DNA of 64,000 bases from Monocercomonoides exilis PA203 (GCA_001643675.2 LSRY02000047.1:62001-126000), one strand, 5' to 3'; positions 5,365-53,804 are shown, counted from the stretch's first letter. The notes: generated by a model not told the origin, from the letters alone. Translations and numbers: made by a program.

Positions 5365-6342
5365 GGGTCATAATTTTATTAGTATCCCGTTTTTATTAGA
5401 TCCTAAATTTTTTTCTCATATTGCTTCATATAGAAGCTTATACGCAATGAGAATAATTTTAAAACAAATAATATATTATTATAAGGTTGTATACCAAATA
5501 TTTTTGATTCTCATTTCTTTTAAAAAAAGATCTGAATTTTTTAAGTTTTATTTTTTGATCAATGTTTTGCTCGTGTTTCCACGAGTTTTTGAAACCAAGC
5601 ATTTTCCTTGTTAGCATTGTTTTTAAACTTCTCTTTTTAACATTTTTGGTTATTTTATAACTATAGAAACTCTTTTTTTTCACTAGTTTTCACACCTCAC
5701 CTTTTTTTCATAAAACTGAAATATAAACAAAGAGAATATTATTTACACCTTTTTCTTTTAATCAAATAATGTATTATTTAGTATAATATCATATAGTTAA
5801 GCTATAATATATGAATATTTGTGAATGACGAGTTTAACACGAAAAACAAAATATCGTCTTTTTCATTTTGTGTACCAAATGTTTTTGGTAAAATATTTTT
5901 ACCATATCACATATTTGTAACAAACAATAATACATTATTTGATAAAAAGAAAAAGGTGTAAATAATATTCTCTTTGTTTATATTTCAGTTTTATGAAAAA
6001 AAGGTGAGGTGTGAAAACTAGTGAAAAAAAAGAGTTTCTATAGTTATAAAATAACCAAAAATGTTAAAAAGAGAAGTTTAAAAACAATGCTAACAAGGAA
6101 AATGCTTGGTTTCAAAAACTCGTGGAAACACGAGCAAAACATTGATCAAAAAATAAAACTTAAAAAATTCAGATCTTTTTTTAAAAGAAATGAGAATCAA
6201 AAATATTTGGTATACAACCTTATAATAATATATTATTTGTTTTAAAATTATTCTCATTGCGTATAAGCTTCTATATGAAGCAATATGAGAAAAAAAAATT
6301 TAGGATCTAATAAAAAACGGGATACTAATAAAATAATGACCC
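5365..6342. mobile_element. Foldback/MITE-like non-autonomous DNA transposon with ~415 bp terminal inverted repeats, TA-flanked
   Basis: Arms 5365-5778 and 5926-6342 are near-perfect reverse complements (identical 74-aa ORFs at 5459-5683 minus and 6021-6245 plus), with a ~147 bp spacer. Ends read TA|GGGTCA...TGACCC|TA. Confidence 0.85.
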
Positions 6343-6616
6343 TATATGTATTGAAGATTTTCATTTTCGATTTTTTAATTTTAAAAAAAAGAATTTTCGT
6401 GAGATTTGTTCTGATGAACCATTTATTTTTTCAAATAATGTTAACATGCATTTCGAAATAAATCAAATTGAGTCTTTGATCATAAAAAAATTCTGAGATT
6501 AATTGATTTCTGGCAGAATGTCAAAAAAAAAATTATAGTGTGAGAAAAAATTACGTTCAAATGTGTTTGAAAATTGAACCTTCATTTTTAATAAATATCA
6601 TTAAACATGTGAATGA

Positions 6617-7980
6617 AGGTTGTTTTTTTTATCCGGATATTATTTTATATGGGAATGAAAAAATATTAAAATTTTATTTCACTATAGCATGTTTGTTTCT
6701 ATAAAAAGGACACTAGTTATAAATATAGTCAATCAACTCTCTCAAGATTATTTTTCGAGAATTTTCTTGTTTTCTTTCATCTACAGAATTATCATCAAAA
6801 AAAACTTTTTTTCGTGTAATTTTCCTTTTCTTTGGTTTTTCATCATCAAACAATTTTTTTCCACAGTTTTTTTCATTATCATCATTCCTTATCTTCTCTT
6901 CTTTCATTTTCTTTTGATTTCTCCATTCATCCAATAAATCTTTATCAGTAATTATTTTTCCATGAAAATCAAATCTGAGATTCTTTTTCATAAGTGTGAC
7001 TGAAGGCTCATCTGGCAACGTGGAAAGAACAGAATGCCATTGATTTGATAACGCTCCACTTTTAACAAAGGAAGAAACAATTGTTTCTGGTTATAATGCA
7101 GTTTGCAGAGCTTGAGGAAGTGAATCTGAAATTGCTTTTCTTCAAAGAGAGAAAGATGAAGAAGTAGGAACGACATATTTGGTGTTAAAACATTTTTTGA
7201 AGACGGCAAATACTCCACGGTCGAGAGGCTGAGTGTGGTGTGTGCTGTGAGGGATAAAAGTCACGAAGTCGATGGACGCATCAGCGAATTTTTGCCAAAT
7301 GTCGGGCTGAGCTCTCGATGGATGAGAGTTCAACAGAAGAAGGCATCTTTCTTTATCTTTGTTCAAAAGAGTTCGTCTTTCCACGATTTTTTGAAGGAGA
7401 GCATCTTCAGTATATCTTCTGAATATTGCGTCGGTCATCCAGCAATCGTTGTCTTCCCAATTATTTATTGGAGAACTGAGTATCACATGCAGTTCGGCTG
7501 GAATCTTCTTTTGAGGCTATAAAACGATGCTTGAAAAAGAATAATTTTATACAGAAGCTGCAACACTCAACGGGGCGTTTGACATGTTCATGGGTGTTTT
7601 GTTGAATCCAGTTTGTGAATCTGAAGGATGCACAACAAGCTTTTTGGTGGTATCCGTGAGGCGAATGGAAGATTCGTCGGGACTAAATATCAATGAAGAA
7701 GAATATTTGGTGGAAAATACGGACTTTCAAGCATTTTACGCACAAAGCACATAAAAATTGCTTTGCTCAAAACTAAATTTCGCTTTCTCAAATTTCAAAA
7801 TAAATCTGATTTTCATATCTGCACACAGACGTCGTTGAAACCAAAACATAAAGTTTTCCAATATATCTCGAATGTCAAAAAATGGACCCAATTTTTATGT
7901 GTTTTTTTTATCTCAAAAAGTCAATGAAAAGTCATTATTTTTCAAAGAAAATGCCTGAAGGAAAATGTTTTGTCCCATAT
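6617..7980 (-). mobile_element. Degenerate pogo/Tigger-like DDE_1 transposase remnant
   Basis: SLIFSPDESS (first D), WMTDAIF, CLLLLNSHPSR (D to N in the LLLLDxHxSH motif) and FIPHSTHHTQPLDRGVFAVFKK, with stops and frameshifts. TIR-like AGGTTGTTTTTTTTATCCGGA at 6617. Confidence 0.82.
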
Positions 7981-8299
7981 GTTGTATTTTTTCGAGTTCA
8001 ATTAATTTCTAATTTTGAACAATATAAACTGAAATTGAAATATGACTTTCGGTTTCAATTACTGGAAAACAATCATTGTGCCGCGTTTTTGGATTCTCAA
8101 AAATATCGTGTTCTACTAATCCTGGCCACAGATCGTTACAGGCTATCAGTTGGTAGAAGTGAAAGAGGAGATGGAACTCTTTTCTATGAAATTTTGCTTC
8201 TTTGCTAATTCTCTTTCTTCATTTTTAATTCGAAAAATTTCCGTTCATGCGTTTCTGTTCTAGACTTTCAATTTGTTTTCTTTTTAAATTTGCATTTTT

Positions 8300-9170
8300 T
8301 ATTCCATTGATTTATTTTCTATTTTCTCCTGCAAAACCGTTCATCATTTACTTACATGTGGGAACTGAATCATGCTGATTTCTTTCAGCTTGCTTGTGCG
8401 CTGATGTTTCAGAACCAAAGCAGCGTTTGGCACACAACAGCAGACAATGCAACTGCATATTGTTTTGTGTCAACCTTCTTTGGGAGTTGAGATATTATGC
8501 ACTTGCAAATATGCATATTGATAAACTATCTTGTCATTAAAGTCCATTTTCTATTTTATTTTTTGGCAACAACCTTTTTTTCTTCACAAATCCAATTTTC
8601 ACTCAAGAATCTGGACTATTGAAAGATAGAAAAAGTGTTTTTTTGTAGATCTTTGAAAATATTGAGAACTATATTTATTGTTTTTTTGAAATGGAATTAA
8701 ATGTGAAGTGAATGAGCAAGAAATGTCAAATTTAATCATGACTCCCTTGAGAAAAAAAGACAATCATTTTTAGGATGTGCTATTAAAGCAATAGAACTTT
8801 TGAGAATTTGTATTTTGAACTCAAATCCAAGCAAAGGCTGTTGACATTTTTTGTTTCCTGGACAAAATACAAACAAATTCCATTTTCATTGAGCTTGCAA
8901 AACGGGTAACATATTCAGAAATGAAAATGATATTATGAGAATGATCAGTAGAGTTACAACTTTTGACAATTATAATGATATGATTCCACATGATTCATGT
9001 AATTCTCTGTTGTAAAACCTTTTATTTCAAAAGCTCAAAACAACTTTCAGTAATGACAGTTCTATTAAATCTCATGTTTCATCTTCGAAGAAAATGCACT
9101 CTTGTGTCTTTTTGTCAATTTGAAAATATTGTTTCATTCATAAAATGTGCAAGAGGGAAATTCGCTTATT
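8300..9170. repeat. Conserved 3' flanking block, copy 1 (paralog at ~45130-45995)
   Basis: Direct comparison, e.g. GCAAAACCGTTCATCATTTACTTACATGTGGGAACTGAA occurs in both; roughly 85-95% identity by eye over ~870 bp. Confidence 0.9.
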
Positions 9171-12100
9171 TCAAGACTCTGATTGCCCACAGGTTTCGTT
9201 GTTGTCACTACCCACTTGTTCATCATCTGAATCTTCTTCATCGATAATGGCATCTGAAATAGTGATCATCACTGCATTTGCTGGGAAGCACTGGATAAAG
9301 TGACGTTTCAGATCAGCCAATGTGGGTCTGTCTTCAGAATTCCCTGAAGTGCACGAAATAACTGCTTGCAAATGCTTTGAGCTTTGAATTCCCTCCAAAC
9401 TTGGTCTCTCTCCTTTCACGATCTTGTCTCCAGCTATTTCTGCTTCATACTCCCCAAACGGGATCTCCAGTGTAAGACACTCCCATAGCATCATACCGAT
9501 AGAGAACACAACCGATTCCTTTGTTGCCTCCATTTTCTTGTTCATCAGCAGCTCAGGCGCCTTCCACCTCAAACACTCTTTTTTGAAGCCATTTTCATCC
9601 TCAAATGCCGATGAAGGAAGAGAGTCACTTTCATCATCACCACTGGTAGAAGTCACAACAGTTGATGAAGAGATGGATGATAAGTCTGAATCATCCGAAG
9701 AGAAGTCTGAATGCATCACGATGCAAATAACCATGTGTTCTGAAAACAATACAATATGAGGGCTAAGATTATCAAGAGATTGAAGAGGAGCTTCCATTTC
9801 ATCAAATGAATGTAATGCTCCATTTGCAACCCAGAACAGGATTTGAGCAGCTGTCATCTCTCTTTCTTTCAAGGAGCCAATCTCCATCTCCTTCTTCTCA
9901 TTCCTTCCATGAAGCAGCATGAACAGTGAATCCCTCAGATCCACAATCAGCTTCTCATGAGGGGATGAACAGGCCATTGCATCCACCAGATTCGACATCG
10001 ATGAAGTGGTTGGGCACAAATCCTCCCTTCGAACAAATGTGGATTCTGTATCTGAAGTGTCTGTAGTTGAAGTGGATGAAATGGAAGGTGATGGCGTTCT
10101 CTTCCTGAGCTCTTCTTCCTCCTCCTTTTCTAATGCCCAATCAGGAATCTTATCTGAGTCTTTTCCCAATATGTATTCAGTTGAGTCACTCTCGGAGAGA
10201 AGATGTTCTGATGACTCTGAGTGTCCCAAGCTTTTCGCATACACTCTCTTCTTTATCTTTTCTTCATTTTTCTTCTCAGCCTCCCTTTCTGCTCTCCTCC
10301 ATTGCTCCTCTGGAGACATCTCCATCGTCACCATCTCGAACGCCTTCGGATCCTTTTTGATGTTATCATTCACAATCTCTTCTAATTCTTCTGTTCTGTT
10401 CTTTGCTTTTCTCCATCGAACAAAAAAGATGATAAATCCAAGAAATACAATTAGAAAAAGTGTTGATAGCATTATAATAATTATAAATGCCCATGATGAC
10501 TTTTCTTCTTTTCCACCTTCAGCAACAATATTATCTCCCTTTGATTGGGGTTCACTTTTGTTCTTCAGAATGATTGCTTCAGTGGAAGATGGCGAATCTT
10601 CATTTTCAAAAAGAATGCACACTGACACTTCTGTTCCATCACCAGCTTTTCTGAAAAGCTCTGTTACAATCACTCCAACAACTGCATTTTCTGATACAAA
10701 GGCTGATTCTTCGAAGTTGAATGTTTCAATCAATTCCTCGTCACCTTCTTTGAACAAGACAGAGAATGACAAATTGCAAGGCAGAAGAAGCGATCCTTCA
10801 AATTTGAGATTTGTAATTGTTCCATTCTCTTCGCTTTTCACACTCTCCAGCACAGGAATGAAGAACGATGATTCCCTTTCAGAAACTATTCCTCCAAAGT
10901 TGCACCCATCATTCAACATCCAAAGTGATGCATTCGGCAACACTCCATCCCCTCCTTTCAGACTCATCACATTCAGCTCCCCTGCTCCTGCACACAGCAC
11001 ATTCCTCCGAGCTGATCCATACCCTGCAACCTCTGGATTGTTGTTCCGAAACTCACTTTTTTCAATGGAAACAATCCCACCCCATATGGACATCCCTCCT
11101 TTCCCAGAATTCGCCACCTCTGAGTATTTCACACAAATCGTGCTGTTTATCGTGTCAACAAGTGATCCATTCCACTTGCATAGTTCATCTCTTTTCCTTT
11201 CATCGTCAACCTCTTCTTCCTCTGCCATTTCCTTTTCTCCCTCGAAAATGCATGAGTCCAAATCAACCATTTTGCACAAGGACACACAAAGCTCATCGCC
11301 TTTCTCTTTCTTCATTCTGTTCTCCTTCACAGTGCAGTTTGCAAATCTCATTGCTCCTCTGAATCCATTGCACATAATGACTGCCGATTCTGAGTGACTC
11401 GATGTGATGTTCACAAATTCAGAAACACTCATCATGGCAACTGGCTCATTGTTCTCCTCTTCTTGCTTTCTTTTGGGTTTTGCTTCTTGAATATCAACAA
11501 TGCTTCCATTCCTCAGCTCAACATTTTTCATCACCATTTTTTCAATCGACACCTCGCCTTTCACACCTTGCATCTCAAAAATCGATGCTTCAGCAATGAT
11601 CCCTGAAATATTGATGCTATCAAGGGTCATCTTGCATTCTCTTGATGAAAGAAAACTCTCGCAAAGCACAGCATCAAAGCAGTTCAAACCAAGCACTTTC
11701 AAAGCAGATCCCTCTGAAAACACAAGAACAGACTTCTCAAATGTCAATCCTTCAATATTCACAGAGCTCATCAAAACACTTCCACCAACACATTTCACAG
11801 CCGAAAATGGAATGCTCAATCTGTTGTCACTTCCCTCTTCACTCACTTTCATTCTCCCAAATATACACGAGGCAACCGACAGTTCTCCATTTTCTTCACA
11901 CAACAGAACACTCGACTGCTTGCCAATCACCGATTGCTCAGAAAACACAACACTCAACCCTTGAAGCATCACATCTCCGCTGCAGCTAATCACACTTTCT
12001 GCTTCGTCTTCTGCTCCAATCATCAGAACAACCATCCCTTCTCCTTTCCCTTTTCTCTGAAGCACAACATTCTCTGCTCGCATCCACCCTTCAATCGGCA

Positions 12101-15100
12101 CACATCCCTCAATCAGTATCCTCCTGTCATAATCCCCCTGAACATGCTCATTCCCAACATCCACGGTTCGGCACGGTGCAGACGCAGACCCACACATCCT
12201 TGTCTCATCAAACGTTGTGGATGACACATAAACAGTATCCGATCGGTAAAACAGCACATATCCAATCAGGTTGATATCCTCATCCTCCTCCCCCAGCGTC
12301 GAGTCTCTCCCATACAGCGCATCTGTCCTGTTGAACACCCCTTCATCCATCCGGAACACAAACTGTCGCTCGTTGATCTGTGCACTTATCAAATAGCAAA
12401 CAACAAACACATCTCTCCCCTTCACAGCCATGTTGTTCCTGAACAGCGTGTTGTTCAGCAAAAACACAAGCTCCCCCTCCCCATGGCAGTCCAAGAACAA
12501 AAACCCTCCTTTTCCTTTCACTGCACTGCACAATGTTCCATTCGAGTCTTTGATCTCAAACTTCATCCATCTTTCATATTCGCAATGCAGCACTCCTCCT
12601 TCTCTCTCTTCTGCAGAGCTGCATCCTTCAAACGAGCTGTTCAGCACAACGAAAGAATACCCACTCCTCAACACATGTGAGCCAACAATGCTGGGCTTTC
12701 TCTTTTCTTCCACTCCTGTCTGCTGAACAGAAGAGAAAGTGCACCCTTCAATCACAACTCCAAGCTCCTCTGCTCCATTCTGTTTGCTTCCATCTTCAAT
12801 CTCCAATGCACATCCTTCCTCAAACTCCACTCTCATTGCTTTTGTCCTGTTCATTCCAAAATATGACGAACCGCCACCAACCACAAAAATTGAAGCTCCC
12901 ATCGTCAATTCATCAATCACACATCCGATTATTTCAACTTTGCCCGAGCTCTGCCGAATCAGATTAAAATTCATCCCTGATGCTCCACCCTGCTTTGCAA
13001 AATCGCATCTCTCAACACCCAGCTCGCTTTTCTGCTGATTCACTGCAAATAACACATATTTTCTCTCTGAAAGAGTGCTTCCAAGCAATATGCTCAGCAT
13101 CCTCAACCTCCCTTTTCCACTCACAAGCACAGCATCTTCTCTGCTCCCACTCACCTCACAGCTCACAACAAGAGCGGTCTTCTCATTTTCCAATCCCGAT
13201 TCAACCTGGTGATCGTCAAGCTCCATCTCTTCCTTCATCCAGTTCTCATCCATCAAATTGAGCATTTTCTGGCTTCCTTCGCTTTCACTGCTTGACAGCC
13301 GTTCCAGCCCAAACCCAACTGTCCCACACATCACTCTGTTGTCTCCACAGCCAATCGCATCATATCCGTTTTCTGATGATACCCATATCTCTGGTGCAAA
13401 ATGCTCAAACAAAAACAGACCCAAATCCACACCCTCACCAAAATGCTCATCACTTCCCACAAACGCATTTTGTTCCTCCTTCCAAGTGCAGATCCATTCT
13501 CCAAAGTGCAGCATGCTCACACTCGAATTCAGCTTGTCGCTCATCACAAACACATTCTTCCCTTGTTTCGCTTTGTTTGTGCCTCCAAATGCAACTGATG
13601 AAAAGAAATACTCCTCACCATCGCTTTTGCATTCAACATACACTCCCCCTCCTTTCCCACTCTCTGAACTGCATTCACACCCTCCAAACTGTGAATCATT
13701 CACCACACTCAAACTGCTGCCACATCCCATGCTCATTCCCAATGCCCCTCCTCTTTCTGACTTTGCTGATTTGCATCCCTCAAACACCACAGCATCCAGC
13801 TCAACAATCATTGTTGTCTGGACATTCGACATTGCACTCAGCACACACGCTTCGCCATTCGTGTTTTCAACAGAAGTGATCGTGCAATTCTGCATCGATA
13901 TCTTGCATTCACTTTGCGGAGATGAATAAGCAATGCACAGCACGCTCCTTCCTTCAACCTTCACGTTTTCCACAATACATCCAATCATTTTCCATTCCCC
14001 AACACTTGACGAACACACAAACGGAGAACTTGCAAATGAGAGAACTCCCTGCTTCCCAATCACTTTCACATCCATCATTTCAACACTGCCACCATCTGCC
14101 TTGAGAAGGCAAAACCCAACCTTCTGTTGAGGTGTCAAGCTCAAAAATGAAAAGGAATCCATCTTCAGCACTCCATCTCGTGAATTCAGCAGCGACTCCA
14201 CTCCTTCTGGAGATATGAACGAGCTCGGAAATAACAAATCCACGCTTTCCCATGCTGCGTCTGCTTCACTCACCAGCACATCCTTTTCGCTCCCACCAAG
14301 TGATCCACTCAAATTAATTCCAACTGCTTCCGAAGACCCAACCCCTTTCACAGACACACCAGAAATATTCAACTGCTTTCCACAAACCCCATTTTCCTTC
14401 ACAACAATTCTTCCATCTCCTTCAACAGAGCCCAAATGCTTCATGCTCTCATCCAGTGTTTTGCATGGATACAGCACATGACCACAATATGTTGCATCCT
14501 CTCCGCTCTGTCCAACATACACTTCTTTCCCCAAAAATCCTGAAAGAAACACAAACAAATCAACATCACATCCCCTTGCCACCTGGTTATCGCTCCCAAA
14601 CAGCGAATTCTCTTTGTTCTCAATCGAGCTCCAAAACGGAAACACCAGCTGAGTGACACTCATCCGAAGATCCTCACACACAAAATAGATATCTCTCCCA
14701 CATGTTGCCTTGTTTCCTGAAAACTGGAGTTCCATCATTCTTATCCCTGATCCGAGTGTTGCATCCAAATACATCCCACCACCTCTGCCACTTTTTGTTT
14801 CATCACCAGCCTCCGTAGATGCTTCGCATCCATCAAACGAAGTGCCATTCAGCAAAATCACTTCCTTGTCAGCATCCACAGTGATTTTCATACATCCGCC
14901 TTTTTTGCTCATTCTTCCCAAACATCCTTCAAAAACGCACTCAGAACATGATATCATCCCCTTTGATGCCAATCCATCAACAACACTTGGACAGTCACCG
15001 ACTGATTCGATGTTGCAGATGTTGCACAGATTCATCTCCAGCAACCCTCCCTCTGAAAGAGATAAAAGAGGAACTGAAGAGCGCATTGATGTGCATTCCA

Positions 15101-17270: not shown

Positions 17271-17859
17271 GCGAACTTTCAAAATCAAGATTCTTTAACT
17301 GAAAAACTGAAACGGGTCTGATCAGCATTCGGAAGAACAAATTATGCTTTCACTTCAGCTTTAAAGGAAAATTTCTTATTTCAATGTGATAAAAATCGAA
17401 AAATGAAGATTTGGAAATTCCATTCCACGTCCAAGCGTAATCTTTCCAAAAATAAGTGTGCTCATCATAATTCTTCAACTTTTCATTTTTTTCAGTTTCA
17501 AAGCTCTTCAAAACAAAAATATCAGAATAAAATGAAACGATTATAAAAGATGTCAAATAAATCATAAAAAAAAAAAGGAAGCAAACAATTATTCATTCCA
17601 ATAATGATTAAAAGAATCAACGAATTCCGGTATTTCTTTTATATCTCTTTTGAAAGACAAGCTCTGTCAAATCTTCTTCACAAATGTCAAATGCCATCTC
17701 CAGAGGTTTTGCACAATCATCTTATAAAAAACTTTAATTGATTTTTCATCTCTTCTTTTTCTGATTGCATCTCCAAATATGTGAGAATTCTTTGCCAAAC
17801 TGCGATGCCATTCATTTGCTTCTTCCATTTTTTTCTTGTAAATTCCTTTTTTTCCCCTT

Positions 17860-22900: not shown

Positions 22901-24482
22901 TTTTCTTCTTTTCTTCTTTTCTTCTTTTCTTCTTTTCTTCTTTTCTTCTTTTCTTCTTTTCTTCTTTTCTTCTTTTCTTCTTTTCTTCTTTCTTCTTTCT
23001 TCTTCTTTATTCCCTTCCTATCAGAGCTGGCACCTTCCCTCTCTCGCTCTCTCTCTTCTACGTGGCTGAGCTTGCCCTCACACTCCACCACCTCCACTCT
23101 CAGAAGATTGTCTATCGCGATTTGAAACCAGAGAACATTTTAGTGCAGGAGAATGGGCATGTTATGCTGACAGACTTTGGCTTGGCGAAGATGGGGATAT
23201 CTGGAGTGGGGGGTGAGACAGCGAGGGAGAAGAAGAAGGAGAAAGAGAAGGAGAAAGAGAAAGAAAAAGAGAAAGATAAGGAGAATTCTGGTGCATCTAC
23301 ACAAAGTGGAGGAAAAGGAGGAGAAAGAGAGAGAGAAAGAGAAAAGGAGAAAGAGAAAGGAAGGAAGATTCAGACGCTGACGGGGCCTGGAATGATGAAA
23401 GGGATGATGAAGATTGAAGAGAAGGAGAACTGCACAGACACAGATCTAATTCCGACACTCACGTCTACTTTTTGTGGCACGCCAGAATATTTAGGTTTGG
23501 ATAAATGAATAAAATAATTGTGATTTTATGATTTATTTCAAATATTGTTTTTTTCGAACATTTGTTTGCTTATTTATTTTTGTATGTTTTCACTTATCAA
23601 CTGTGTTTATCTGACAAATCCTTTTTATAAATTCATTCTCATTTTATTTATTTATTTATTAATAATTTTTATTTTATTCAATACAAACAGCACCTGAAGT
23701 GATTCAAGGGCAGCCATATGGCACAGCAGTTGATTGGTGGGCGTTGGGCGTTCTCTTCTACGAGATGCTCGTTGGCCATCCACCTTTTTATTCATCAAAC
23801 AGGAACCAGCTGTACTGGAACACTCTGAATGTGTGATTGTGATTGCAATGATGTTTATGTTTTTGTTTTGATAGACATTAAATGGACATTTTTCTTTCCT
23901 TTTCTTTCAATTATTTTTGTTTTAATTTCAAAATTCATTTTTATCAACCATTTCTTTCGTATATTCCCTTTCATATTCTTCTCATTTACCGCCCTTCCTT
24001 TCCCATCTTCACAGTCTGCCCTCACCTTCCCCTCCTCCATCCCTTCCGTCGTCCAGAGCTTCATCTCCTCTCTGCTCTCGCGCAACCCCATCACCCGCCT
24101 CGGCTCAGGCCCCACGAGGGGAATGGAAGTGCTGTCACACCCGGTGTTTGCAGGGATCGACTGGGACAAGCTGCGGAAGCTGATGATTGCTCCGCCGTTT
24201 AAGCCGAATCTGAAGCTGGGCGTGATGGACATGTCAAACATTGACACGGCTTTCTTGTCGGAGCCTCCAATTGACTCGCCTGGGCCGGAGTTTGCGTCGG
24301 ATGCAGAGGCAGAAGAGGTGGAGAGAGAATTCGAAGGGTTTGACTACAACGAGGAGATGGTGCAGGAGGAGTGGGAGAAGGAGATCAAGGAGATGAAGGA
24401 GCAGAGGAGGAAGGAGAGGGAGAGGGAGAGAATCGAATGGGAGAGGAAGAAAAAGGAGGGGAAGACGAAAAAGACTGGGTAA
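19915..24482 (+). CDS. AGC-group Ser/Thr kinase (PKB/Akt-, SGK- or S6K-like) with N-terminal PH-like domain; 8 exons
   Basis: Exons ~19915-20283, 20371-20640, 20903-21301, 21613-22322, 23025-23494, 23691-23830 and 24015-24482 were resolved (the first 87-nt intron is in frame, so the count is approximate). Motifs [61 protein letters not shown]. Confidence 0.92.
22565..22990. repeat. (TTTTCTTC)n 8-bp intronic tandem repeat, ~53 copies
   Basis: Seen directly; lies inside an AGC kinase intron just upstream of the acceptor at 23024. Confidence 0.95.
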
Positions 24483-41977: not shown

Positions 41978-42989
41978 TGATTGTTACTGAACTTGATTAT
42001 AACCTAAACTGCTTTTTCATGAAAATTTTTTAGAAATTTATTTTTTCAAAGCGAAAAAGAAAGTTTTCAAATTTTATCAAAATCCACCATTTTTAAAAAA
42101 ATTGATATATTTATTATATTTCAATGAACTTTTTCGTTAATATTGAAGCAAAAAATTATAACTTTCATTTAGAAAAAATATTGAAAATTGACTGAAAAAT
42201 TCACATAATTAAAAAAAAATTGTGATTATTCTCTATTTTGATATGATTATTGGCAAAGAAAAAACACAAGAAAATGAGTAAATTTTATTTTTAATGAACG
42301 GAAAAATGTGATTTCTCGAGGTCTTGATAATAACCGAAGTGATAATTTCCGAACAAAACTGAATAAGTCTTCTATTTCAATGAATAAAAATTCAAAAATT
42401 TCAAAAATTTAAAAAAAAAGACTTGAAAACATAGTGTGGAACTTAATTCAAAAAGAAAAGGTACTTGTCCTAAATATTTGTATCTTTGAAAGAATTCTTT
42501 TATTTGAATTGGGTGTTTATTATTGAAATCATATATTTTTTCGGTATATGTGTGATCTTCTAATTCACAGTTATTTGCAAAAGAATTTTCAAAAAACTGT
42601 CACATGTTTTCAAATTATTATCTACTAAACACATATTGTCATTGAAAAACAGAGAAGTTCATTTATGATTTTTTCAATAACACAAAATTGATAATTAACT
42701 ATATGCAACAAATTGTTAATTCGAAAATCTCGATTGAAAAAATATGAAATCAATAAGAATGACACGATCAAAAATCTATGAATGAAATCAGAATAAGACA
42801 TTTTTATTGGAAAGAAAAGTGCTTATTGGAATATGCATCCAATATTTTGGTGATATGCTGTTTATTCGAATAAACAGCATGTGATTGAATAATGAGGTTT
42901 TTCATTTGAATAAAGGGAAAATGTCTCCTTTGGTTATCATCCTGTTTTCTGTTGAATGTTTATGTTTCATGAAAATAAACTTTATGTTA

Positions 42990-43195
42990 GGATAATTATT
43001 TTTGAAATCAAACTTTCGTTCAAGTTTTTATTTTATTTTTCATCTCAATGGGATTTTGAAAAATTGAACCGAAACTGTTCACACATTTTGTCCATGATGT
43101 TGTTGCTGCAGAAATATTATTCTTTCAAAAATTTCATTGAGATTTAAGTTTTGATCAAAACTTGAACAAAAGTTTGATTTCAAAAATTATCATCC
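42990..43195. mobile_element. Small MITE (~206 bp) with ~40 bp imperfect TIRs, TA-flanked
   Basis: TA|GGATAATTATTTTTGAAATCAAACTTTCGTTCAAGTTTT ... AAAACTTGAACAAAAGTTTGATTTCAAAAATTATCATCC|TA. Confidence 0.65.
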
Positions 43196-43694
43196 TAATG
43201 TTTATAAACTTGTTTAATATGTGCAAAAAAGGTCTTCAATCAAAACAAACAAACAAATAAATAAATTAATAAACAGATAAATGAATAAAATTAATAAAAA
43301 TTAATTAATAAAAATTAAATCAAATGGAACAAAAATAAAAAATATATAAAATCAAATTAAACCGAAAATTCAATGCAATTTATCTCATTATTTAAAAAGA
43401 AAAACGGTATTTTTTATAAGCTCAGGAATAATAACAATTGTTGTTTTCGAGATTTCGAATATTCACAATTTTCAAATAATAATGAGTGATTTTCAATTGA
43501 TTTAGTCATGATTTTTTTGAAGAAATGAATGCTGTAATATTTAATATCATTATCAATAAAGTGCACTTGAACGTGAAAAAAAACAAAACAAAAATGGAAT
43601 TGAAAAAACTTTTTTTTTTTTTTTTTTTTTTTGCAATTTCTAAAAAAAGTCTCTGCCTAAACCGTATTACATAATTAAAAAAAGAATAAATAAA

Positions 43695-43971
43695 TAAATG
43701 GGACAAATTATTTGACTTCAGGCATTTTCATTGAAAAATTATGCGCTTTCGATAAGCTTTTTGTGTTCGAAAAATTCAAAAAAATGGGTTCATTTTTTGA
43801 CATTCATGGAATGTCACAAAACTTTTTGTCATCACATGTATGATGGCTCTTTGCAAATAAGAAAAATTAATTTATATTGAAATCTGAGAATGATAGATAA
43901 AGTTATGAGTGAATCGATTTTTTCATTCTTTGTGCATGAAAAGCTTGAAAATCCGTATTTTTCCCCAAATA
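43695..43971 (+). mobile_element. 5' fragment of the same pogo/DDE_1 transposase family as 6617-7980
   Basis: Its reverse complement matches 7705-7980 in three blocks: GAAAATGCCTGAAG..TTTGTCCCAT, GAATGTCAAAAAATG.ACCCA, and AAAATACGGA.TTTCAAGC.TTT.A.GCACAAAG. Confidence 0.75.
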
Positions 43972-44932
43972 GTGTGGTTTTTTAATCCGGACATTTTTTT
44001 TATTGGCATATCTCACTAAATAAAAACAAAAAACAAAAAAAGCATGTTGCACCAGGTTTGAGCACGTATTAAATGTTCATACAAAAAATTTTTTTGTCAA
44101 TTATTGTTTTTGATGAAGATCTTGAGAATTTTTAATTTATTTTTGATCATTTGTTTTGCTCGTTTTTAATCGACTCTCTTTTTCTGTCAGTTTTTAGCTA
44201 TTGGACCATGAATCATTCATAATGAAGTTTTATTATTACAAATCTTTTTTGTTTTTTCTCATTTTTTCACGAGTTTTTCGCATTTCATTGTTTTTGAAGA
44301 AAATTATAAAAAACTCATATATTCTCAACTGTTTTTTGTTCTTTCCATAAAAATATTAAAATTTTGTGCAAATTAGATAAAAATGCATTGCTACTCAAAA
44401 TTGTTTGTCATATTTCATTAAATCAAAAACAAAATGAGCAATTTTGTCAAAATGAAAATTTGATTTGTACTGCTAAAAGCAGCAACATTTAACAAAAATT
44501 TTACGTTGTGCATATTTACTGCAAGTATTTATCATTTGGCTCATATCACAAAAAATATCTAATAAATATTGTGAAACTCATTATTTTCAGTTTTTTATAA
44601 TTTTCTTCAAAAACAATGAAATGCGAAAAACTCGTGAAAAAATGAGAAAAAACAAAAAAGATTTGTAATAATAAAACTTCATTATGAATGATTCATGGTC
44701 CAATAGCTAAAAACTGACAGAAAAAGAGAGTCGATTAAAAACGAGCAAAACAAATGATCAAAAATAAATTAAAAATTCTCAAGATCTTCATCAAAAACAA
44801 TAATTGACAAAAAAATTTTTTGTATGAACATTTAATACGTGCTCAAACCTGGTGCAACATGCTTTTTTTGTTTTTTGTTTTTATTTAGTGAGATATGCCA
44901 ATAAAAAAAATGTCCGGATTAAAAAACCACCT
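43972..44932. mobile_element. Second foldback/MITE-like element with ~344 bp terminal inverted repeats, TA-flanked
   Basis: Arms 43972-44315 and 44589-44932 are near-perfect reverse complements, with a ~273 bp spacer. Ends read TA|GTGTGGTTTTTTAATCCGGA...TCCGGATTAAAAAACCACCT|TA. Confidence 0.85.
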
Positions 44933-44989: not shown

Positions 44990-45065
<76 letters not shown>

Positions 45066-45067
45066 TC
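44988..45067. repeat. (TTTC)n microsatellite
   Basis: About 20 tandem units visible directly. Confidence 0.95.
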
Positions 45068-45129
45068 AGTCTGTACGTCAAATTCGAATTTTTCCCTTTT
45101 ATGCGCTTCTCTTTCGCTCTTTTTATTTT

Positions 45130-45995
45130 ATTGAAATTTTTTTCTATTTTCTCTGCAAAACCGTTCATCATTTACTTACATGTGGGAACTGAAGCACACT
45201 GATTTCTTTCAGCTTGCTTGTGCGCTGATGTTTCAGAACCAAAGCAGTGTTTGGCACACAACAGCAGACAATACAACTGCGTATTGTTTTGTGTCAACCT
45301 TCTTTGGGAGTTGAGATATTATGCACTTGCAAATATGCATATTGATAAACTTTCTAGTCATTGAAGTCCATTTTCTATTTTATTTTTGACAACAACCTTT
45401 TTTTCTTCAACATATTCATTTTTCACTCAAGAATCTGGACTATTGAAAGGTGGAAAAAGTGTTTTTGAAAGACCTTTGAAAATATTGAGAACTATATTTA
45501 TTGTTTTGTTGAAATGGAATTAAATGCGAAGTGAATGAGCAAGAAATGTCAAATTTAATCATGACTCCCTTGAGAAAAAAAGACAATCATTTTTAGGATG
45601 TGCTATTAAAACAATTGAACTTATGAGTATTTGCATTTTGAACACAAATCCAAGCAAAGGCTGTTGACATTTGATGTTTCCTGCACAACTTTCAAACGAA
45701 TTCCTTTTTTCATTGAGCTTGCAAAACGGGTAATATATTCAGAAATGAAAATGAAATTATGAGAATGATTGGAATACAATACAACTTTTGACAATAATAA
45801 TTATTCAAATACCAATAATTTGTGTGATTCTCTGTTGAAAAACCTTTTATTTCAAAAGCCCAAAACAACTTCCAGTAATTGTTATTTTACAAAACAAAAG
45901 GTTTCTTCGACTAAGCAAATGCACTCTTGTGTCTTTTTGTCAATTTGAAAATATTATTTCATTCCAGAAATGTGCAAGAGGGAAAATTGCTTATT
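45130..45995. repeat. Conserved 3' flanking block, copy 2 (paralog at ~8300-9170)
   Basis: Direct alignment by eye with 8300-9170. Confidence 0.9.
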
Positions 45996-48900
45996 TCAAG
46001 ATTCCGATTGTCTACAGGTTTCGTTGTTGTCACTTGCAACCTGCGCATCATCAGATTCTTCTTCATCGATAATGGCATCTGAAATAGTGATCAGCATTGC
46101 ATTTGCTGGGAAGCACTGGATAAAGTGACGCTTCAGATCAGTCAATGTGGGTCTGTCTTCAGAATTCCCTGAAGTGCACGAAATAACTGCTTGCAAATGC
46201 TTTGAGCTTTGAATTCCCTCCAAACTTGGTCTCTCTCCTTTCACGATCTTGTCTCCGGCTATTTCTGCTTCATACTCCCCAAAGGGAATATTCAGTGTCA
46301 AGCACTCCCAGAGCATCATACCGATCGAGAATGAAACTGATTCCTTTGTTGCTCCCAATTTCTTATTGATCAGCAGTTCAGGCGCCTTCCACCTCAGGCA
46401 CTCTTTTTTGTAATAATCATCCTCTTCAAATGCAGATGAAGGCAGAGAATCATCATCATCATCACTGGCTGATGTCACAACAGTTGATGAAGAGATGGAT
46501 GATGAATCTGAGTCTGAAGATGAGAAGTCTGAGCGCATGACAATGCAGATCACCATGTGCTCAGAGAACAGCACAATGTGAGGACTGAGATTGGATAGAG
46601 AAGAGAGAGGATTCTCCATTTCATCAAATGAATGGAGCGAAAGATTAGCCACCCAAAACAGGATCTGGGCAGCTGTCATCTCTCTTTCTTTCAAGGTGCC
46701 AATCGCCATCTCCTTCTTCTCATTCCTTCCATGAAGCAGCATGAACAGTGAATCCCTCAAATCCACAATCAGCTTTTCATGAGGGGATGAACATGCCATT
46801 GCATCCACCAGATTCGACATCGACGATGTGGTTGGGCACAGGTCCTCCCTCCGAACAAAAGTTGAATCTGTGTCTGAAGTGTCTGTGGTGGAAGTGGATG
46901 AAATGGATGGCGATGGAGATCTCTTACTGAGCTCTTCTTCCTCCTCCTTTTCCAATGCCCATTCTGGGATCTTATCTGAGTCTTTTCCCAAGATGTATTC
47001 AGTGGAGTCACTCTCAGATAGAAGATGCTCTGATGATTCTGAATGTCCCAAGCTTTTCGCATACACACTCTTTTTGATCCTCTCTTCATTCTTCTTCTCA
47101 GCCTCCCTTTCTGCTCTCCTCCATTGCTCCTCTGGAGACATCTCCATCGTCACCATCTCGAACGCCTTCGGATCCTTTTTGATGTTATCGTTCACAATGA
47201 CTTCAAGTTCCTCTGTCCTTCTCTTTTGTTTACTCCATCGGACAACAAAAACAATAAAACCAACAAGTACAATTAAAAACAGAACAACAAGCACAATCAC
47301 AATCAACAACCAATAAGATTTTCCTTCTTTCACTCCTTCAACAATTCTTTCGTCTCCATTCGTTTTTGCTTCACTTTTGTTCTTCACAACAAATGAATCA
47401 GTTGATGATGGCGAATCTTCATTTCCAAAAAGAATGCACACTGACACTTCTGTTCCATCACCAGCTTTTCTGAAAAGCTCTGTTTCAATCACTCCAACCA
47501 CTGCATTTTCTGATACAAAGGCTGATTCTTCGAAGTTGAATGTTTCAATCAATTCCTCGTCACCTTCTTTGAACAAGACAGAGAATGACAAATTGCAAGG
47601 CAGAAAAAGCGATCCTTCAAATTTGAGATTTGTATTTGTTCCATTCTCTTCACTTTTCACACTATCCAGCACAGAAATGAAGAACGATGATTCCCTTTCA
47701 GAAACAATCCCTTCAAAGATGCACACATCATTCAACATCCAAAGTGATGTATTTTTTTCCCATCCATCTCCTCCTTTCAAACTCATCACATTCAATGTTC
47801 CAGAATCTGAACAGATGATGTTTCTTCTGAGTGATGGGTATTTTGTGAATCTTGGATTGTCATTTGTGAACAACCCCATTTCAATTGAAACACTTCCGCC
47901 ACTCACAGACAACGCTCCATCTGAGGCATTCGACATGATGGTGTCTTTCACTGCTGCTGATGAGTCTTTCATTTCCACCATTGATCCGTTCCATCGACAG
48001 ACCTCGTCTTGCCCAGCATTCGACTCATCCCTTTCATCGCCAACATTCATTGTCCCATCAAACAAACAGGAATCCAGAGCAATGTTTTGACATGAACTCA
48101 TTGTCAAAGCACTTCCTTTCATGTTTGCCACACTTTTGTGAACAAGAGATATATTTGCACAGCTGACACGACAGGAACATTTGTCAACATTGATCACAGT
48201 TGATTGCTCACCAGAAATGCTGATGTTTTCGAACTTTGAATGGAGAAAATCAAAAGATTCTCCAGCAAGATCAGTGTCAACATTTTCTTTTCCTTCGACA
48301 AAAACCACATTCTTCTCGACTTGCACAGAATTCGCTTTGACCTTGTCGAGAGACAAATTCCCACAAAACGAGTGAATGCAAATCAGAAAAGGGTGAGCAA
48401 CAGAGATGTTTTCAATCAACAGATCAAAGACACTCAATTCTGAATCAACAAGCTCCACAATCGCATATGAAATGTGGGACTCGTCAATGCTTGTCTTTCC
48501 TGAGAATTGACAACTTTCAATTGAGAGGGCTGCATGCTCTGAATACAAGAATGAGGAGTGAGCTGTTGTTATTTTTGTTGGTAAGCTGAAAGAAATCAGC
48601 TTAAGAGCAACTGAGCCAGAACAATTAACAATGCAGCTCTTTTCCATTTCTGTGATTTCCTCAATTTCAATTGAAGCTGTTGTCTTCTTTCGAGACATCA
48701 TCGTCACATCGCAGAGTTCGATTTCGCAGTCGATCACACTCTGCAAGTCAACAAGAAGCCTGCTGTCCACTTTGTGAGTCAGATGGATGAGGGAGTAGCC
48801 AATGGTGGCACAAGGAAGGGCAAGGGTTCCACACTGCTTTGTATCATTTCCTCCTTTGATCTGTTCTGAGCTCACAATAATTGTGTCTGACTGATAAATG

Positions 48901-51900
48901 AGAATAAAATCAAGAAGATTCACAGGCTCAGATGAAAATTCACTTCGGTCAATCCCATACAAAGCATTCAGACGAACAAAGACACTCGGATCAAAATCCA
49001 TTTTGAACATTGTCTCGTTCAGTTGTGTGTTCAGATCATTGCACTCAATAAATAAATCTCGTCCCACATGAGCTGTATTGGCCTCGAACTTCAATGGCTC
49101 GATGTGGATGCTGAGCTTTGTTGTGAGTTCTGTTCTCAAATACAGTCCACCTCCCCTTCCATTTGTTGTCGAGCACCCACACATTTCAATAATGCATTCA
49201 TTCAAGTTGAATGTGGCTCCCTCGCACAGCTCAATGAGGACACATCCTCCTTTTTGTGTTTCTGGTGACTGGCATCCAGAAAAGTTTGATTCCACAACAA
49301 ATATGTTTATGTTTGTCGAGTCGATGCAACTCAGAATGCGGCTCTCATCAGTCTTTCCGTTCACTGAAAGAAAAGAGGAAGAGTTGATTTGGATCTGTTT
49401 TTTCTCTTCATTTCTTTCACCTGTTGGAATAGAGACAACATTCACAAGACTTTCATCAGTCAGATTCACTGATTGGATTTTCATGTTAGTAATTCCAACA
49501 TTCACGTTGTTGGAAGTCTCTATCATGCTTCGCCCAATGTTTATTGATTCAACTTCCAAATCTTGAATCATCAAAAATCCCTCCAGAATTTGGATAAATG
49601 CAACTGAAAGGGGATTTGTATGTGGAGCAAGTGAGTGGAACTGGCAACTCATCATTGTGATGTTTCCATTTTGGCAGGCAATGAGAGCGTAATTCAGACA
49701 CACAAAATCTGACCCTGCGGATATTCGAACATGATTAATTGTCACTTTGCGATTAACGTTCAGCAACACATTTTTATCAGGAAGCACATTCTCAAACATC
49801 AAAGTGCTCATTTCAGGCTCATCGATTGTGCTTTTTGATGATTCAATTGTCAAATCAGAAATGCCAAATTCATCTCTGATTGCACACTCTCCTTTCAGTT
49901 TTATTTTCTTTTCTTCTGAATCGGACTTGATCTGTTTCATCCCTTTCCAAAAGGATTTGCAAGGATCTTTGTTGCTTCCACATCTCAAAACATCAGCCCC
50001 GTCTTCAGACACAAACACAGTTCCACTCTTAAACTTGATGAGGAATCGGAAAAGATCAGTATTCAAGAACTTTGTGTCACTTCCAACGAACAATGTTTCA
50101 TCACTCGCCATTTGTTTATATTCAAAGACGAATTTATCGTTTGTGACAGTGGAATTCAGATCAATGCACTTCAGAAACATATTCTTACCAAATTCTGCTT
50201 TGTTGTTTGAGAATATGGGATTTGTAATTGTGAATGAGGGATTCTCGCCAAACAAATCAAGAAACAGTGCACCACCTCTTCCGTTCTTTGTGATGCCTTG
50301 CTGAGACCAAGGTGCATGGCAAGAAGTGAAACTGCATTGCTCGACTGTTAATGAGCTTTGATCTCCTGAACTGACATAAATTCCTCCTCCTCCGTTTGAC
50401 TCTGATTCAACACCACAATTTTCAAACTCACAATTTGAAACATTGACAGACACAGCTTCTGAGTTGTCTTCGCTCGAAATGCAAAGACAAGCACCATTAT
50501 GCTTCTGACGCGTGATTGAATGAAAATCTGTGTTTGTGATATTCACAAAATTTCCATTTTTAATGAGCACGATGCTGCAATTGTCCAATGCACAGGATGA
50601 AAATTCAGAGTTTTGGATAGAAATGGATCCTCTTTCCTCTGCTGAAATCAGACCATCCTTTGAATTGCTTGTGACATTCCTCAGAAACGCTGTTTCCAGT
50701 GTTCCTTCTGCATTCTCTCCACACACGCAAATTGCTGGATAGTTCCCAAAGCACATGTCTGAAACTTCGAATTGATCAAGGCTCAATGCCCCACTGAGGG
50801 CACAGCAAAAGCTGTATTCAACAACCACATTGCTTTCAGATGGAACAACACAACAGTTGTGGATATTCAACGAATGTGAAGTGCAGCACAGAAATGGCTT
50901 GCTCTGAGGCAACGAGGATGGAAGAGAGAACGATATGTTTGAGAATGTTGCATTTATTCTTGTTTCAACAAATCCATTTTCAGGCGACGATGAATCCCCA
51001 ACAACTTCAATCACTGTCCCCTTCCTTTCAACAGAAATCTCACAATCTCTGGTTTCCAAAACAGATGAATGATCGAACTTGAAAGGAGAAACGATTTTGA
51101 TTTTTCTTGCGGAAGAGCCGAAATTTGTCTTTTCAGCATATTGCAAGGATCTGCATGGAGACACTGAAAATCCACATTTCAAATGATCAGAGCCAGTTGA
51201 ACCACTCACAACAACTACAGAAGGAAAAGGTTTCCAAAACAAAACCAGAGGGATTGCAGCACCTATTTCGCTTTCCTCAAATCCCATCAGCTCATCCAAT
51301 GAATTCTCATCAAGAGTAAACCCAAACTTTGAGCGAGAACACAACTCTTCAAGCTCTGTGGAAACCACAAATACATTCTTTCCGTAAACTGCTTGATTTC
51401 CTGTGAAGATGATATTTCCAAAATCAAAAGCCTTTCCTCCAGCTGTGCAGTCAATCATGATTCCCCCTCCAACGCCTCTTTCATTTGGTCCATTATTTGC
51501 CTTGCATTGTTCGAATCCACTTCCAAATTCATTTGAGCTTTTGTTGCCTATTGCCACTTCGCTTCCATCATTCATCTTCACCATCAATGCACCCCCATTT
51601 CCATCAAGACACGAGCAGTTACGCATCCTGAAATCCACAAGGCTCAATTTCTCCCCTTCATCCACAGTCACTTCAACCAATGAACCGTTTCCTGACTTTC
51701 GCTCAACACCATCAAACACTGATCCTGAGAAGGCAACATCATTCACAGATTCCATTGAGATCAAGGGAATATTCTCCATGCAGATGTTTTTGAACAAGCA
51801 ATTATTGATGACTGTTGTTGATCCGCCTTTTGCTTCAATCAAAGATCGACTGAATGGCTGTGCCTGGCTTTCAGATTCGCTTCGAATCTCGCATCCTTCC

Positions 51901-53804
51901 AGCTTTGCTGCGCCATTTCCATTCACAGACAAAAGGCTGCCACTGGCTGAGCTTGTTGAATCGTGGATAAGGGTGAATGCCTCCATGATGAGATCTCCAT
52001 TATCCACATAAATCAGAGACTCGCCCGAAGTCACATCTCTGGAGCGAACAACAGAGTTGTCGCATCTGTGGCCTATGAATTCCATTTTGAATGAATAAAT
52101 TGAAATGCTGCTTTCTTCATAATGCCCGCTGAAAACAACCACATTTTGTGTTGAACGCTTGATTAATGCATGTCCAATGGTTTTGAATGGTCTAGCCCGA
52201 TATCCACAGCCAGATTCATCTGCTCCTCTCAGCCAGGAAACAAATAACTCATCAAAGCCATTTTAAGATGTGACAGCATCAGGAAGCCAATAATCCTTGT
52301 TGTTTGTGCCATCAACTGCTCGAGGATGGCTGCTTGTTGAACAACATCCAACAACATCTGAATCAGATATTTTTCCAACCCAATTTCCGATGAGTGTAAC
52401 ATCTGTCCCATTTGTTGAGTTACTTGCCTTGTTTCCATTGAAAAAGCAGTATTTAATTGATCCTCCATGTTTTTCTCCAAAAGACATTGTGTATAGCAAT
52501 GCACCAAATAGACTAGAAACGCAGTTTTTTATGCAACAATCAGTTATATATCCTTTTCCGTTTGCTGCATAAAAGCAAGGACCTGCATTCACTGATGCCT
52601 TACATTCGGACACAAGCGATGAATCAATTATTGCTCCATTTGTTAACATTATTAAAATGGCTGCGTAGTGAATTGAATAACAATTGTAGAAAATACAGTT
52701 TTTGATGATTAATTGTCGATCAGAATACGATGCAACTCCACCACAGCAATATGATGCATTTGAATTAGTGAAATTTGAATCGAAAATTTCAACATTGCAA
52801 CATAATTTTGTCATGATTGATCCGCCATCGCAATTGATATCTGGTGTTCCACAAGAACACTCATTAAAATGACATCTTAAAATTAGGCAGACAACATTTT
52901 CAGATGAGAAATACAATGCTCCACCATCATCGTTTGGAGATGAGCATTTGAAGAAGCAATCAACAAACGTAATGTTTCCCTCATCGAAAAAGTTACTGGA
53001 ATTAAACGAATTGTTTCTGAAATTGATGCTATTTTGGCATGAATGGAATGATGAGTTTTTTGCAGTGAAAGAAATGCTGGATGGAGCTACAATTGATCCG
53101 TAATATGGCTGAACGCAGTTAATGAAATCTGAAGAAGAAACATCAACACACTCTGCTGATTGTTTTTTGTGACGGATATAAGCTGAATGATGAAAAGTTG
53201 AAATATTCTGAAATTGACAGTTGTGCATCACAACATTTGATGCCTTTCCAGAATACAACACTGTTCCGTTCAGTTTTCCCAATGCAACATTTTTCATCAT
53301 CGAGTTGCTCATTGTCAATGATCCGAACTTTGCTACATGAACAACTGATTGTCTGATTGTTTGTGAACGATCAACCAACACTTGTCTTATTTTTGACATT
53401 GCGACTTTGCCAGAAGATGTGATGAATGAACTCAAGGATGAAGATGATATGAAAAAACTGCAACTCGAGATATTAATCAATGAAAGTGAATCTCCACTGA
53501 GGGAGCATGTTTTGAAATTTGACAACAAGTTCATTTGATTGAAATCTACCGAAGAGTTAACAAGATTAAACAACTGCTGGTGATTCGATGAAGTTACACA
53601 TGTTTTTTCTTCCTCTTCACTTTCCTTATAAAAGAACTGACTTGCCAATGAACCCCTTTTTTCTTGACTGGATTTATGAAGAGAAGGGCTTGAAAATGGG
53701 ATATTCGTCTCATAATTCGTCAAAGTCTCAAAATGGTGATTGAAGCAATCATTTGACACACAAACCCCAAATAACAAGCTCAAATGGAAGATAGCTATTG
53801 ACAT
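45996..53804 (-). CDS. Second giant receptor-like pseudokinase gene, interrupted by one in-frame TAA at 52263-52265 (recent pseudogene, truncated secreted form or sequence error)
   Basis: Signal peptide MSIAIFHLSLLFGVCVS (ATG 53804). The frame continues past the stop (...DAVTS*NGFDELFVSWLRGADESGCG...) into the 2048-aa ORF, which carries the TM and a C-terminus closely similar to 9171-17270. Confidence 0.82.

Follow-up and report, generated by a model that had tools for sequence, protein, structure and literature searches.

Probable Mosaic Origin by Gene Conversion of Giant Beta-Helix Receptor-like Genes in Monocercomonoides exilis

Introduction

The var genes of Plasmodium, the VSG genes of trypanosomes and the VSP genes of Giardia are multigene surface families that evolve by ectopic gene conversion. 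The polymorphic membrane proteins (Pmps) of Chlamydia and the Pmp-like proteins of Trichomonas are beta-helix surface proteins, and the Entamoeba transmembrane kinases are an example of a receptor-like transmembrane kinase family in a protist. Here we describe two giant receptor-like genes, A and B, of Monocercomonoides exilis. Both lie in a stretch of 64,000 nucleotides (bases 62001–126000 of contig C44, in an assembly of 82.3 Mb and 101 contigs). This whole stretch was analyzed; it is called the window, and positions are counted from its first letter.

Genes A and B belong to the largest gene family of M. exilis, which has been published only as "protein tyrosine kinases". The genome report counts 332 predicted members, 320 of them "tyrosine kinase-like" (Karnkowska et al. 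2019, PMC6759080), and kinase-family genes overlap 28.9 Mb of "unclassified repeats" across the chromosomes (Treitli et al. 2021, PMC8767320). A literature search found no paper that describes the architecture of these proteins. An earlier interpretation of the window, made without database searches (the sequence-only reading), had proposed that A and B are receptors with a variable beta-helix ectodomain and a constant kinase-remnant tail, and that a transposon family helped to spread or recombine them. The first part of this proposal stands, and so does recombination between family members, which follows from the different closest relatives of different gene segments. The role given to transposons is not supported.

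Results and Discussion

Genealogy of the Shared Tract

Comparison of the window with itself yields one long direct match, between 8296–10975 and 45120–47794, with 87.9% identity over 2684 bp. This tract takes in the final 1.8 kb of the coding sequence along with 875 bp past the stop codon (Table 1). The noncoding portion is the "0.87 kb 3′ block" that had been noticed at both loci; it is real, but it is not special to them. The full-length block occurs at only seven places in the genome, all on C44 and each directly after a tail of the same gene family. The carriers are A, B and the genes C (at 146 kb), G (267 kb), D (322 kb), F (398 kb) and E (609 kb); partial, weaker matches lie on contigs C28, C12, C17 and C36. 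The shared 3′ block is the mark of a seven-gene clade on C44 and not of a two-locus cassette. Scans of the window with Rfam and for tRNA genes returned nothing, which shows that the block is not a known RNA gene.

Identity along the seven C44 genes was compared in a sliding manner, and a best-hit scan covered 29 further family loci. In the region more than 1.9 kb upstream of the stop codon, A is 92–98% identical to D, E, F and G, B is 86–98% identical to C, and A and B share only ~50% identity. From 1740 to 1500 nucleotides (nt) before the stop, A is instead 96–98% identical to B and C and only ~58% identical to D–G. Between ~1440 nt before and 900 nt after the stop, the seven genes are all 65–99% alike in a patchy manner. 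The best-hit scan finds ectodomains of the A type also on C28 and those of the B type also on C19. In the tail core the best match hops among many contigs, and in the last ~90 codons and the flank the C44 clade matches above all, with a few loci on C28 and C17 aligning there less well. The juxtamembrane patch of A (Table 1), as judged from these identity profiles, marks a gene-conversion breakpoint.

Synonymous divergence (dS) leads to the same picture. Between A and D–G it amounts to 0.09–0.12 in the ectodomain piece and to 0.65–0.81 in the tail, and the 3′ flanks are ~89% identical. A single gene pair that contains segments of such different age requires gene conversion or recombination between paralogs. 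We are fairly confident that A and B are mosaics that arose by ectopic gene conversion or recombination between paralogs, and that the adjacent transposons are bystanders.

The exchanges can be pictured as follows. The ectodomain follows one genealogy, in which A belongs with D, E, F, G and the C28 genes and B with C and the C19 genes, and the juxtamembrane patch follows another that unites A with B. The tail core is scrambled among paralogs of many chromosomes, while homogenization of the C-terminus and ~0.9 kb of flank is confined to the seven C44 genes. These exchanges probably draw their homology from the long, near-identical tail-coding core of all paralogs.

The Gene Family and Its Proteins

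The presence of an intronless receptor-like gene of ~8 kb at each locus, as initially described, is confirmed for A (Table 1); the reading frame of B is interrupted. Both parts of B lie in one frame with the TAA between them, as coordinate arithmetic shows, and the closest paralog of B has an intact frame of 2616 amino acids (aa). The two parts of B were searched as separate pieces. By BLASTP, A and B are 40% identical over 2177 columns, the tail included. The ectodomains aligned over their length share ~29% identity, and the N-terminal ~600 aa, which correspond to the upstream frame of B, share ~27% in patches; divergence is greatest in the N-terminal domains. Over 549 aa, the tails reach 87% identity. 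The early impression of weakly similar ectodomains joined to very similar last ~550 aa was therefore accurate.

A genome search with the 549-aa C-terminal part of A returned 79 scored places from 1602 first-look candidates, each at least 69% identical and located in open frames of up to 4193 aa, mostly 2000–4200 aa. The invariant 111-aa tail core has 1064 candidate places in the genome; the best 150 of these are all full-length, free of stops and at least 90% identical. In the protein database, 530 proteins match. Among the 120 listed, 118 are named, and all 118 are M. exilis proteins entered as "uncharacterized protein MONOS_..." or "putative protein tyrosine and serine/threonine kinase"; the closest annotated relatives of A are MONOS_ loci. 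The tail of A is 69–84% identical to the 118 paralogs (median 74%), and the best match to its ectodomain over the same proteins has a median identity of 28%. The tails of A and B, each following one transmembrane helix, are 69–90% identical to these 118 other family proteins. Both genes also share with the family a divergent ectodomain and a long frame of 2000–4200 aa without introns, which in B carries the one TAA. The combination of a variable outside and a constant inside, suspected for two loci, is a trait of the entire family, and A and B are ordinary members of a family of ~1000 giant intronless genes.

Three inverted pairs of family genes have identical search scores: C32:695373-700303, arranged tail-to-tail with 1.7 kb between the genes, and C9:1472008/1491920 and C5:1011768/1033949, each ~20 kb apart. 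These pairs look like recent inverted duplications.

The ~340 near-invariant tail residues were defined in an alignment of 37 diverse paralogs. Within this region the sequence W-K-A-P-E-L-L and the next ~95 residues match the Pfam profile PF07714 (E 2.6e-9), and the segment also matches BTK, ZAK, ILK and CTR1 chains by PDB profiles. Nothing aligned with Pfam or PDB profiles outside this C-lobe part of the kinase, even when the segment alone was searched at E up to 5. A search of the Atlas with the tail as a feature gave generic kinase fragments only. Inspection of the 37-paralog alignment revealed no glycine-rich loop and no VAIK lysine, and an ATP-binding N-lobe thus appears to be missing. 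In the same alignment the catalytic-loop register, which was assigned via its spacing to the APE motif and not by structural alignment, reads L-x-N-L-S-P-H-I (Asp to Asn, Asn to Ile), and the DFG position reads S-D-[FL]-[SL]; a recognizable HRD motif, catalytic loop or DFG motif was not found.

Contrary to its published label, the tail cannot be filed as an active kinase. The ratio of nonsynonymous to synonymous divergence (dN/dS) of the tail is 0.09–0.18 between paralogs, which places this dead half-kinase under strong purifying selection. From its sequence, the tail is most likely a docking or scaffolding module and not an enzyme. The oxymonad Blattamonas nauphoetae has distant relatives of the tail (28–38% identity) that match the kinase C-lobe only. 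Such C-lobe-only tails in Blattamonas imply that this tail type predates the expansion in M. exilis. Two of the B. nauphoetae proteins, P0255 and P0235, are large and end in a C-lobe-only segment 28–41% identical to the M. exilis tail; in P0255 (2418 aa) a transmembrane segment precedes it.

The N-terminus of A carries a hydrophobic signal-like segment, taken as a signal peptide. Four cap motifs are spaced at ~355–385 aa along the gene, and each module opens with the cap V-x-x-G-x-D-x3-C-G-x4-P-C. An alignment of 69 paralogous segments (~22% identity) contains the module twice within residues 590–1320; the module ends in G-x-G-G-G...F-x-x-N-x-A-x-x-G-x-D-x-F-V, followed by V-S-x-x-G-x-D-x3-C-G-x4-P-C. 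Comparison of A with itself by BLASTP gave no internal repeats at E 1e-3; it is only the family alignment and the structural model that reveal the modules.

This AlphaFold2 model of the two modules is all-beta, with a predicted local distance difference test score (pLDDT) of 88.4 and a predicted template modeling score of 0.80, and it contains stacked short strands that form one domain per module. Foldseek against the PDB gave a probability of 1.0 to PL6 lyases, which are two-domain alginate lyases, and to pectin methylesterase, with further matches to phage tailspikes and antigen 43. In the Atlas, Beta_helix, DUF1565 and NosD models match one module with a TM-score by target of 0.69–0.79 over 285–290 residues. 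The ectodomain profile matched nothing among PDB sequences, and only fold comparison gave matches; the Pfam Beta_helix match is sub-threshold (E 1.7e-4). The confident model and the fold matches together identify the ectodomain as a string of right-handed parallel beta-helix domains. No match to Chlam_PMP (PF02415) was found in the ectodomain segments with Pfam at E up to 5, and the motifs GGA[ILV] or G-G-[AG]-x and FxxN or F-x-x-N-x-A occur only about once per ~370-aa module. By these motifs and profiles, the proteins do not appear to belong to the chlamydial Pmp repeat family.

Alternative Explanations

Three other explanations for the arrangement of A and B were weighed. The one that fares best, and that we still consider improbable, is a programmed variant-surface system. 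In such a system expression would be regulated, for example in a mutually exclusive manner, and segment exchange would be selected for diversification instead of being a by-product of homology. A very large repertoire with hypervariable ectodomains on a constant tail, mosaic recombination, and the animal gut as the habitat of the organism are all what such a system might look like. The available RNA data consist of assembled contigs from four metatranscriptome runs of one study on bulk cultures. RNA depth is very high on the conserved core and many members appear transcribed, which suits an active repertoire; the contigs also suggest, not decisively, that many members are expressed at once. 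The membrane-proximal ectodomain piece has a dN/dS of 0.2–0.45 in recent paralogs and no sign of positive selection. An expression site, a switch element or a telomeric bias was not seen, with no dedicated test made, and M. exilis is regarded as a commensal (PMC6759080).

The same contigs bear on the 3′ block. They match the tail of A without differences and extend past the stop codon as far as 9126; additional pieces lie at 8893–9036 and ~8374, and none cover the transposon remnants at 7000–8266. RNA past the stop but not at 7000–8266 fits a 3′ untranslated region (UTR) of about the size of the 3′ block and argues against carry-over of DNA. The block therefore probably corresponds roughly to the 3′ UTR, although contigs cannot show transcript ends.

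Less probable still is a single old segmental duplication followed by divergence without exchange between the paralogs. The 6 kb beyond the stop codon were compared for all seven clade genes. The first 0.9–1.1 kb are common to all of them at 83–93% identity, so that the seven share a coding 3′ end as well as its flank. Furthermore, a convergent kinase-like gene lies 2–4 kb downstream of C–G, though not beside A or B. This neighbor, which contains low-complexity stretches, was duplicated along with five of the seven clade genes, and segmental duplication has therefore occurred in the clade. One duplication, however, predicts one genealogy along the gene. The ectodomain of A sides with D–G against B, yet the ~300-bp juxtamembrane patch reverses this relation; neighboring parts of one and the same gene pair show an about seven-fold difference in dS; and the C19 relatives of the B ectodomain lack the 3′ block. 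A single duplication, which the sequence-only reading had named as a competing account, is ruled out by this conflict unless exchange between paralogs is added to it.

In the remaining alternative, the receptor genes or their constant 3′ block would form a cassette that is spread or recombined by a pogo and foldback transposon family. Repeat-derived DNA does lie within ~3 kb downstream of both genes, and paralog homology ends where this DNA begins. At locus A, tblastn identified a pogo transposase remnant at 6719–7708, which corresponds to aa 73–402 of an intact 403-aa copy with 84% identity and is broken by stops; a DDE_1 domain (Pfam PF03184, E 6.8e-13) is recognized at 7142–7486. The copy covers ~1.1 kb of a ~2.05-kb element and is not a complete one with both ends and a TA target-site duplication. 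Genome-wide, the pogo group numbers 715 candidate places. When intact transposases were used as tblastn queries over the window, the copy at locus A was the only hit, and a DDE_1 remnant in locus B was rejected. The expectation of such a remnant at each locus thus holds for A alone, and what the two flanks have in common is a ~280-bp dispersed repeat, whose two copies are inverted relative to each other and 73% identical. This repeat, with ~1100 candidate places, looked like a part of pogo because of its nesting within one pogo copy, and that assignment was rejected since the match corresponds to a ~270-bp insertion in this copy only. The pogo copy in question, on C2 (L036 2692-2962), holds the nested ~280-bp repeat.

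A foldback element of ~1 kb is present at each locus, as had been described. Both have long inverted arms, dispersed near-identical copies and no coding capacity, as is typical of foldback elements or of miniature inverted-repeat transposable elements (MITEs). The first has at least 40 scored dispersed copies from 162 first-look candidates, with up to 96% identity, and the second at least 40 from 116. Self-comparison of the window revealed no similarity between them, so that they represent unrelated families, and the TA flanks once ascribed to both fit the first and are not evident for the second. Among the other clade genes, E is followed at 4.4 kb by a copy of foldback 1, and G by another foldback and two copies of the 280-bp repeat. 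The foldback of A is 96% identical to copies on other contigs and 83% identical to the one near E, which indicates independent insertions. Arm pairs of the first foldback family (~380–510 bp) lie 1–3.5 kb apart at C1:2321632-2323638, C72:34420-38399 and C34:248730-252584, and these may be longer parent elements of the 984-bp foldback. The transposon pieces sit outside the shared tract, their kinds differ among the seven clade genes, and element ends do not bound the tract. The confinement of all other mobile DNA to the two flanks, as the sequence-only reading had it, was checked over these element families only.

Proximity was tested by counting 228 pogo and foldback places near family genes, with A and B excluded; the lists of elements and genes were partial, but they were drawn regardless of adjacency. 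For 77 genes, 2 elements lay within 5 kb downstream and 5 within 5 kb upstream, where 1.1 per side are expected for uniform placement and 2.9 for placement in noncoding DNA only. For 148 genes the counts were 3 and 5 (expected 2.05 and 5.5). Neither sample shows enrichment or a 3′ bias, and the enrichment beside family genes that the sequence-only reading had set as its own check did not appear. By that measure the cassette explanation is already largely refuted, and with a transposase remnant at only one locus, unrelated foldbacks and independently inserted copies of abundant repeats it is hardly credible. The pogo remnant, the ~280-bp repeat and the two foldbacks are instead independent insertions of abundant dispersed families, located in noncoding DNA beyond the shared tract.

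Several points weigh against the interpretation of A and B as gene-conversion mosaics flanked by bystander transposons. The proximity test used 228 of ~850 element candidates (nearly 2000 if the ~280-bp repeat, which was left out, is counted) and covered 77 and 148 of ~1000 genes; with such partial lists a weak enrichment would be missed. The homology of A and B with their paralogs stops ~0.9–1.1 kb past the stop codon, exactly where transposon-derived DNA starts, and it does not resume within the window, so the repeats may help to set this boundary. The 3′ flank is ~11% diverged, compared with a proportion of 0.25–0.45 at synonymous sites of the tail. This low value implies either constraint on the flank or incoming conversions that raise the divergence of the tail, and we favor conversions from distant paralogs into the tail. 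The apparent lack of an N-lobe is read from the sequence, since an AlphaFold2 model of the tail with the 37 paralogs was poor (pLDDT 47.6), the alignment being too uniform. Finally, the beta-helix domains are most likely surface binding or sensing modules, a cell-surface function that we infer.

The useful result is a negative one: the adjacent transposons are bystanders, and ordinary gene conversion inside a chromosome-specific clade accounts for the shared 3′ end. The segment-wise genealogies provide a concrete and testable picture of how the family evolves. We further suggest, as a tentative and rather doubtful extension, that the tail-coding core (~1 kb in ~1000 genes) acts as a genome-wide recombination handle and that the family is a self-shuffling receptor repertoire. 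If so, exchanges would bring ectodomain types together with new transmembrane, tail and 3′ UTR ends, the ends would be homogenized per chromosome, and many beta-helix surface receptors would feed one conserved noncatalytic signaling module.

For the genome as a whole, ~1000 genes of 8–12 kb amount to ~1/10 of its 82 Mb, and the family probably accounts for much of the published "unclassified repeats". The "tyrosine kinase" label is misleading. By their appearance, these are surface binders whose tail is a dead half-kinase, and this alters the reading of both the kinome and the surface biology of this model amitochondriate.

Table 1. Positions of the Features of Loci A and B in the Window
Feature	Position	Strand	Description
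Foldback 1	5362..6345	.	984-bp near-palindrome, arms 91% alike; TA flank possible
Truncated pogo element	6617..7709	-	~1.1 kb of a ~2.05-kb element, locus A
~280-bp dispersed repeat, copy A	7704..7993	.	1112 candidate genome places
3′ block of A	8296..9170	-	noncoding; 85–93% identity among seven C44 genes; probably 3′ UTR
Gene A	9171..17288	-	intronless open frame, 2705 aa (2699 aa from annotated start, P0001); giant type I membrane protein
Cytoplasmic tail of A	9174..10418	-	415 aa; ~340 near-invariant residues, then variable C-terminus
Kinase C-lobe after APE motif	9300..9584	-	sole part recognizable as protein kinase; Pfam profile positions 163–257 of 258
Transmembrane helix of A	10419..10499	-	P0001 residues 2258–2284
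Juxtamembrane patch	10670..10975	-	A 96–98% to B, C and two C19 genes; ~58% to ectodomain partners of A
Two tandem ectodomain modules of A	13311..15503	-	P0001 residues 590–1320; each a predicted right-handed parallel beta-helix
Weak 212-bp palindrome	42987..43198	.	68% identity between arms
~280-bp dispersed repeat, copy B	43684..43971	.	inverted relative to copy A; not a transposase remnant
Foldback 2	43974..44930	.	342-bp arms 100% alike, 273-bp loop; TA flank not evident
3′ block of B	45120..45995	-	counterpart of the block of A
Gene B	45996..53921	-	single frame broken by in-frame TAA at 52263–52265; downstream part 2048 aa (annotated 2029 aa, P0002), upstream part 552 aa

Other Features of the Window

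The last 8 kb of the window (56001–64000) have a G+C content of 51–58%, compared with ~30–45% elsewhere, and a purine-rich plus strand with a GC skew of up to +0.24 and an AT skew of +0.2. Open frames in this region do not exceed 303 aa, and neither Pfam or Rfam matches nor tandem repeats occur in it. A near-perfect tandem array at 22563–23008, with copies 98–99% alike at multiples of 56 bp, lies inside or beside a gene with an N-terminal protein kinase fragment (21613–22428). The open frame 27621–29303 on the minus strand matches the Sir2 family only from profile position 69 onward, which implies that the domain starts in another exon and fits the remark of the sequence-only reading that other genes have introns.

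Comparison with Known Systems

The repeats beside A and B belong to known kinds of mobile DNA, namely pogo (Tc1/mariner superfamily, with DDE_1), represented by the truncated copy in locus A, and foldback or MITE-like elements, represented by long-armed, dispersed elements in both loci. Here they are bystanders: the shared tract is not delimited by them, paralogs differ in the elements beside them, and family genes show no enrichment for them.

Like the var, VSG and VSP families, the A/B family combines a large repertoire, a variable exposed part, a conserved anchoring end and mosaic genes. In contrast to those systems, the host relation of M. exilis is commensal, and exclusive expression, expression sites, telomeric clustering and immune evasion are without evidence here.

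The published protein tyrosine kinase family of M. exilis (Karnkowska et al. 2019, PMC6759080; Treitli et al. 2021, PMC8767320) comprises the same genes as A and B. Both accounts give the kinase label and counts only; the beta-helix ectodomain, the single transmembrane helix, the loss of the catalytic kinase half and the segment-wise gene conversion are absent from them.

The predicted right-handed beta-helix fold of A is shared with chlamydial Pmps, Trichomonas Pmp-like proteins, bacterial DUF1565, Beta_helix and NosD proteins, PL6 lyases and phage tailspikes. In the A/B family, by contrast, the beta-helices belong to eukaryotic proteins that are anchored in the membrane and carry a kinase remnant.

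Protists, plants and animals possess receptor-like pseudokinases and transmembrane kinase families, which likewise consist of single-pass proteins that are variable outside and carry a conserved kinase-fold module inside. Integrin-linked kinase, one of the PDB matches of the tail, is an example from the pseudokinase and kinase group, and the intracellular module probably signals by docking and not by catalysis. The tail of A and B differs from those receptors in retaining only the C-lobe after the APE motif, with no recognizable N-lobe or catalytic loop. The ectodomains differ in being built from tandem DUF1565/NosD-like beta-helices instead of cysteine-rich, leucine-rich (LRR) or immunoglobulin (Ig) repeats, and the family stands apart by its far higher copy number (~1000) and its far larger, intronless genes of 8–12 kb.

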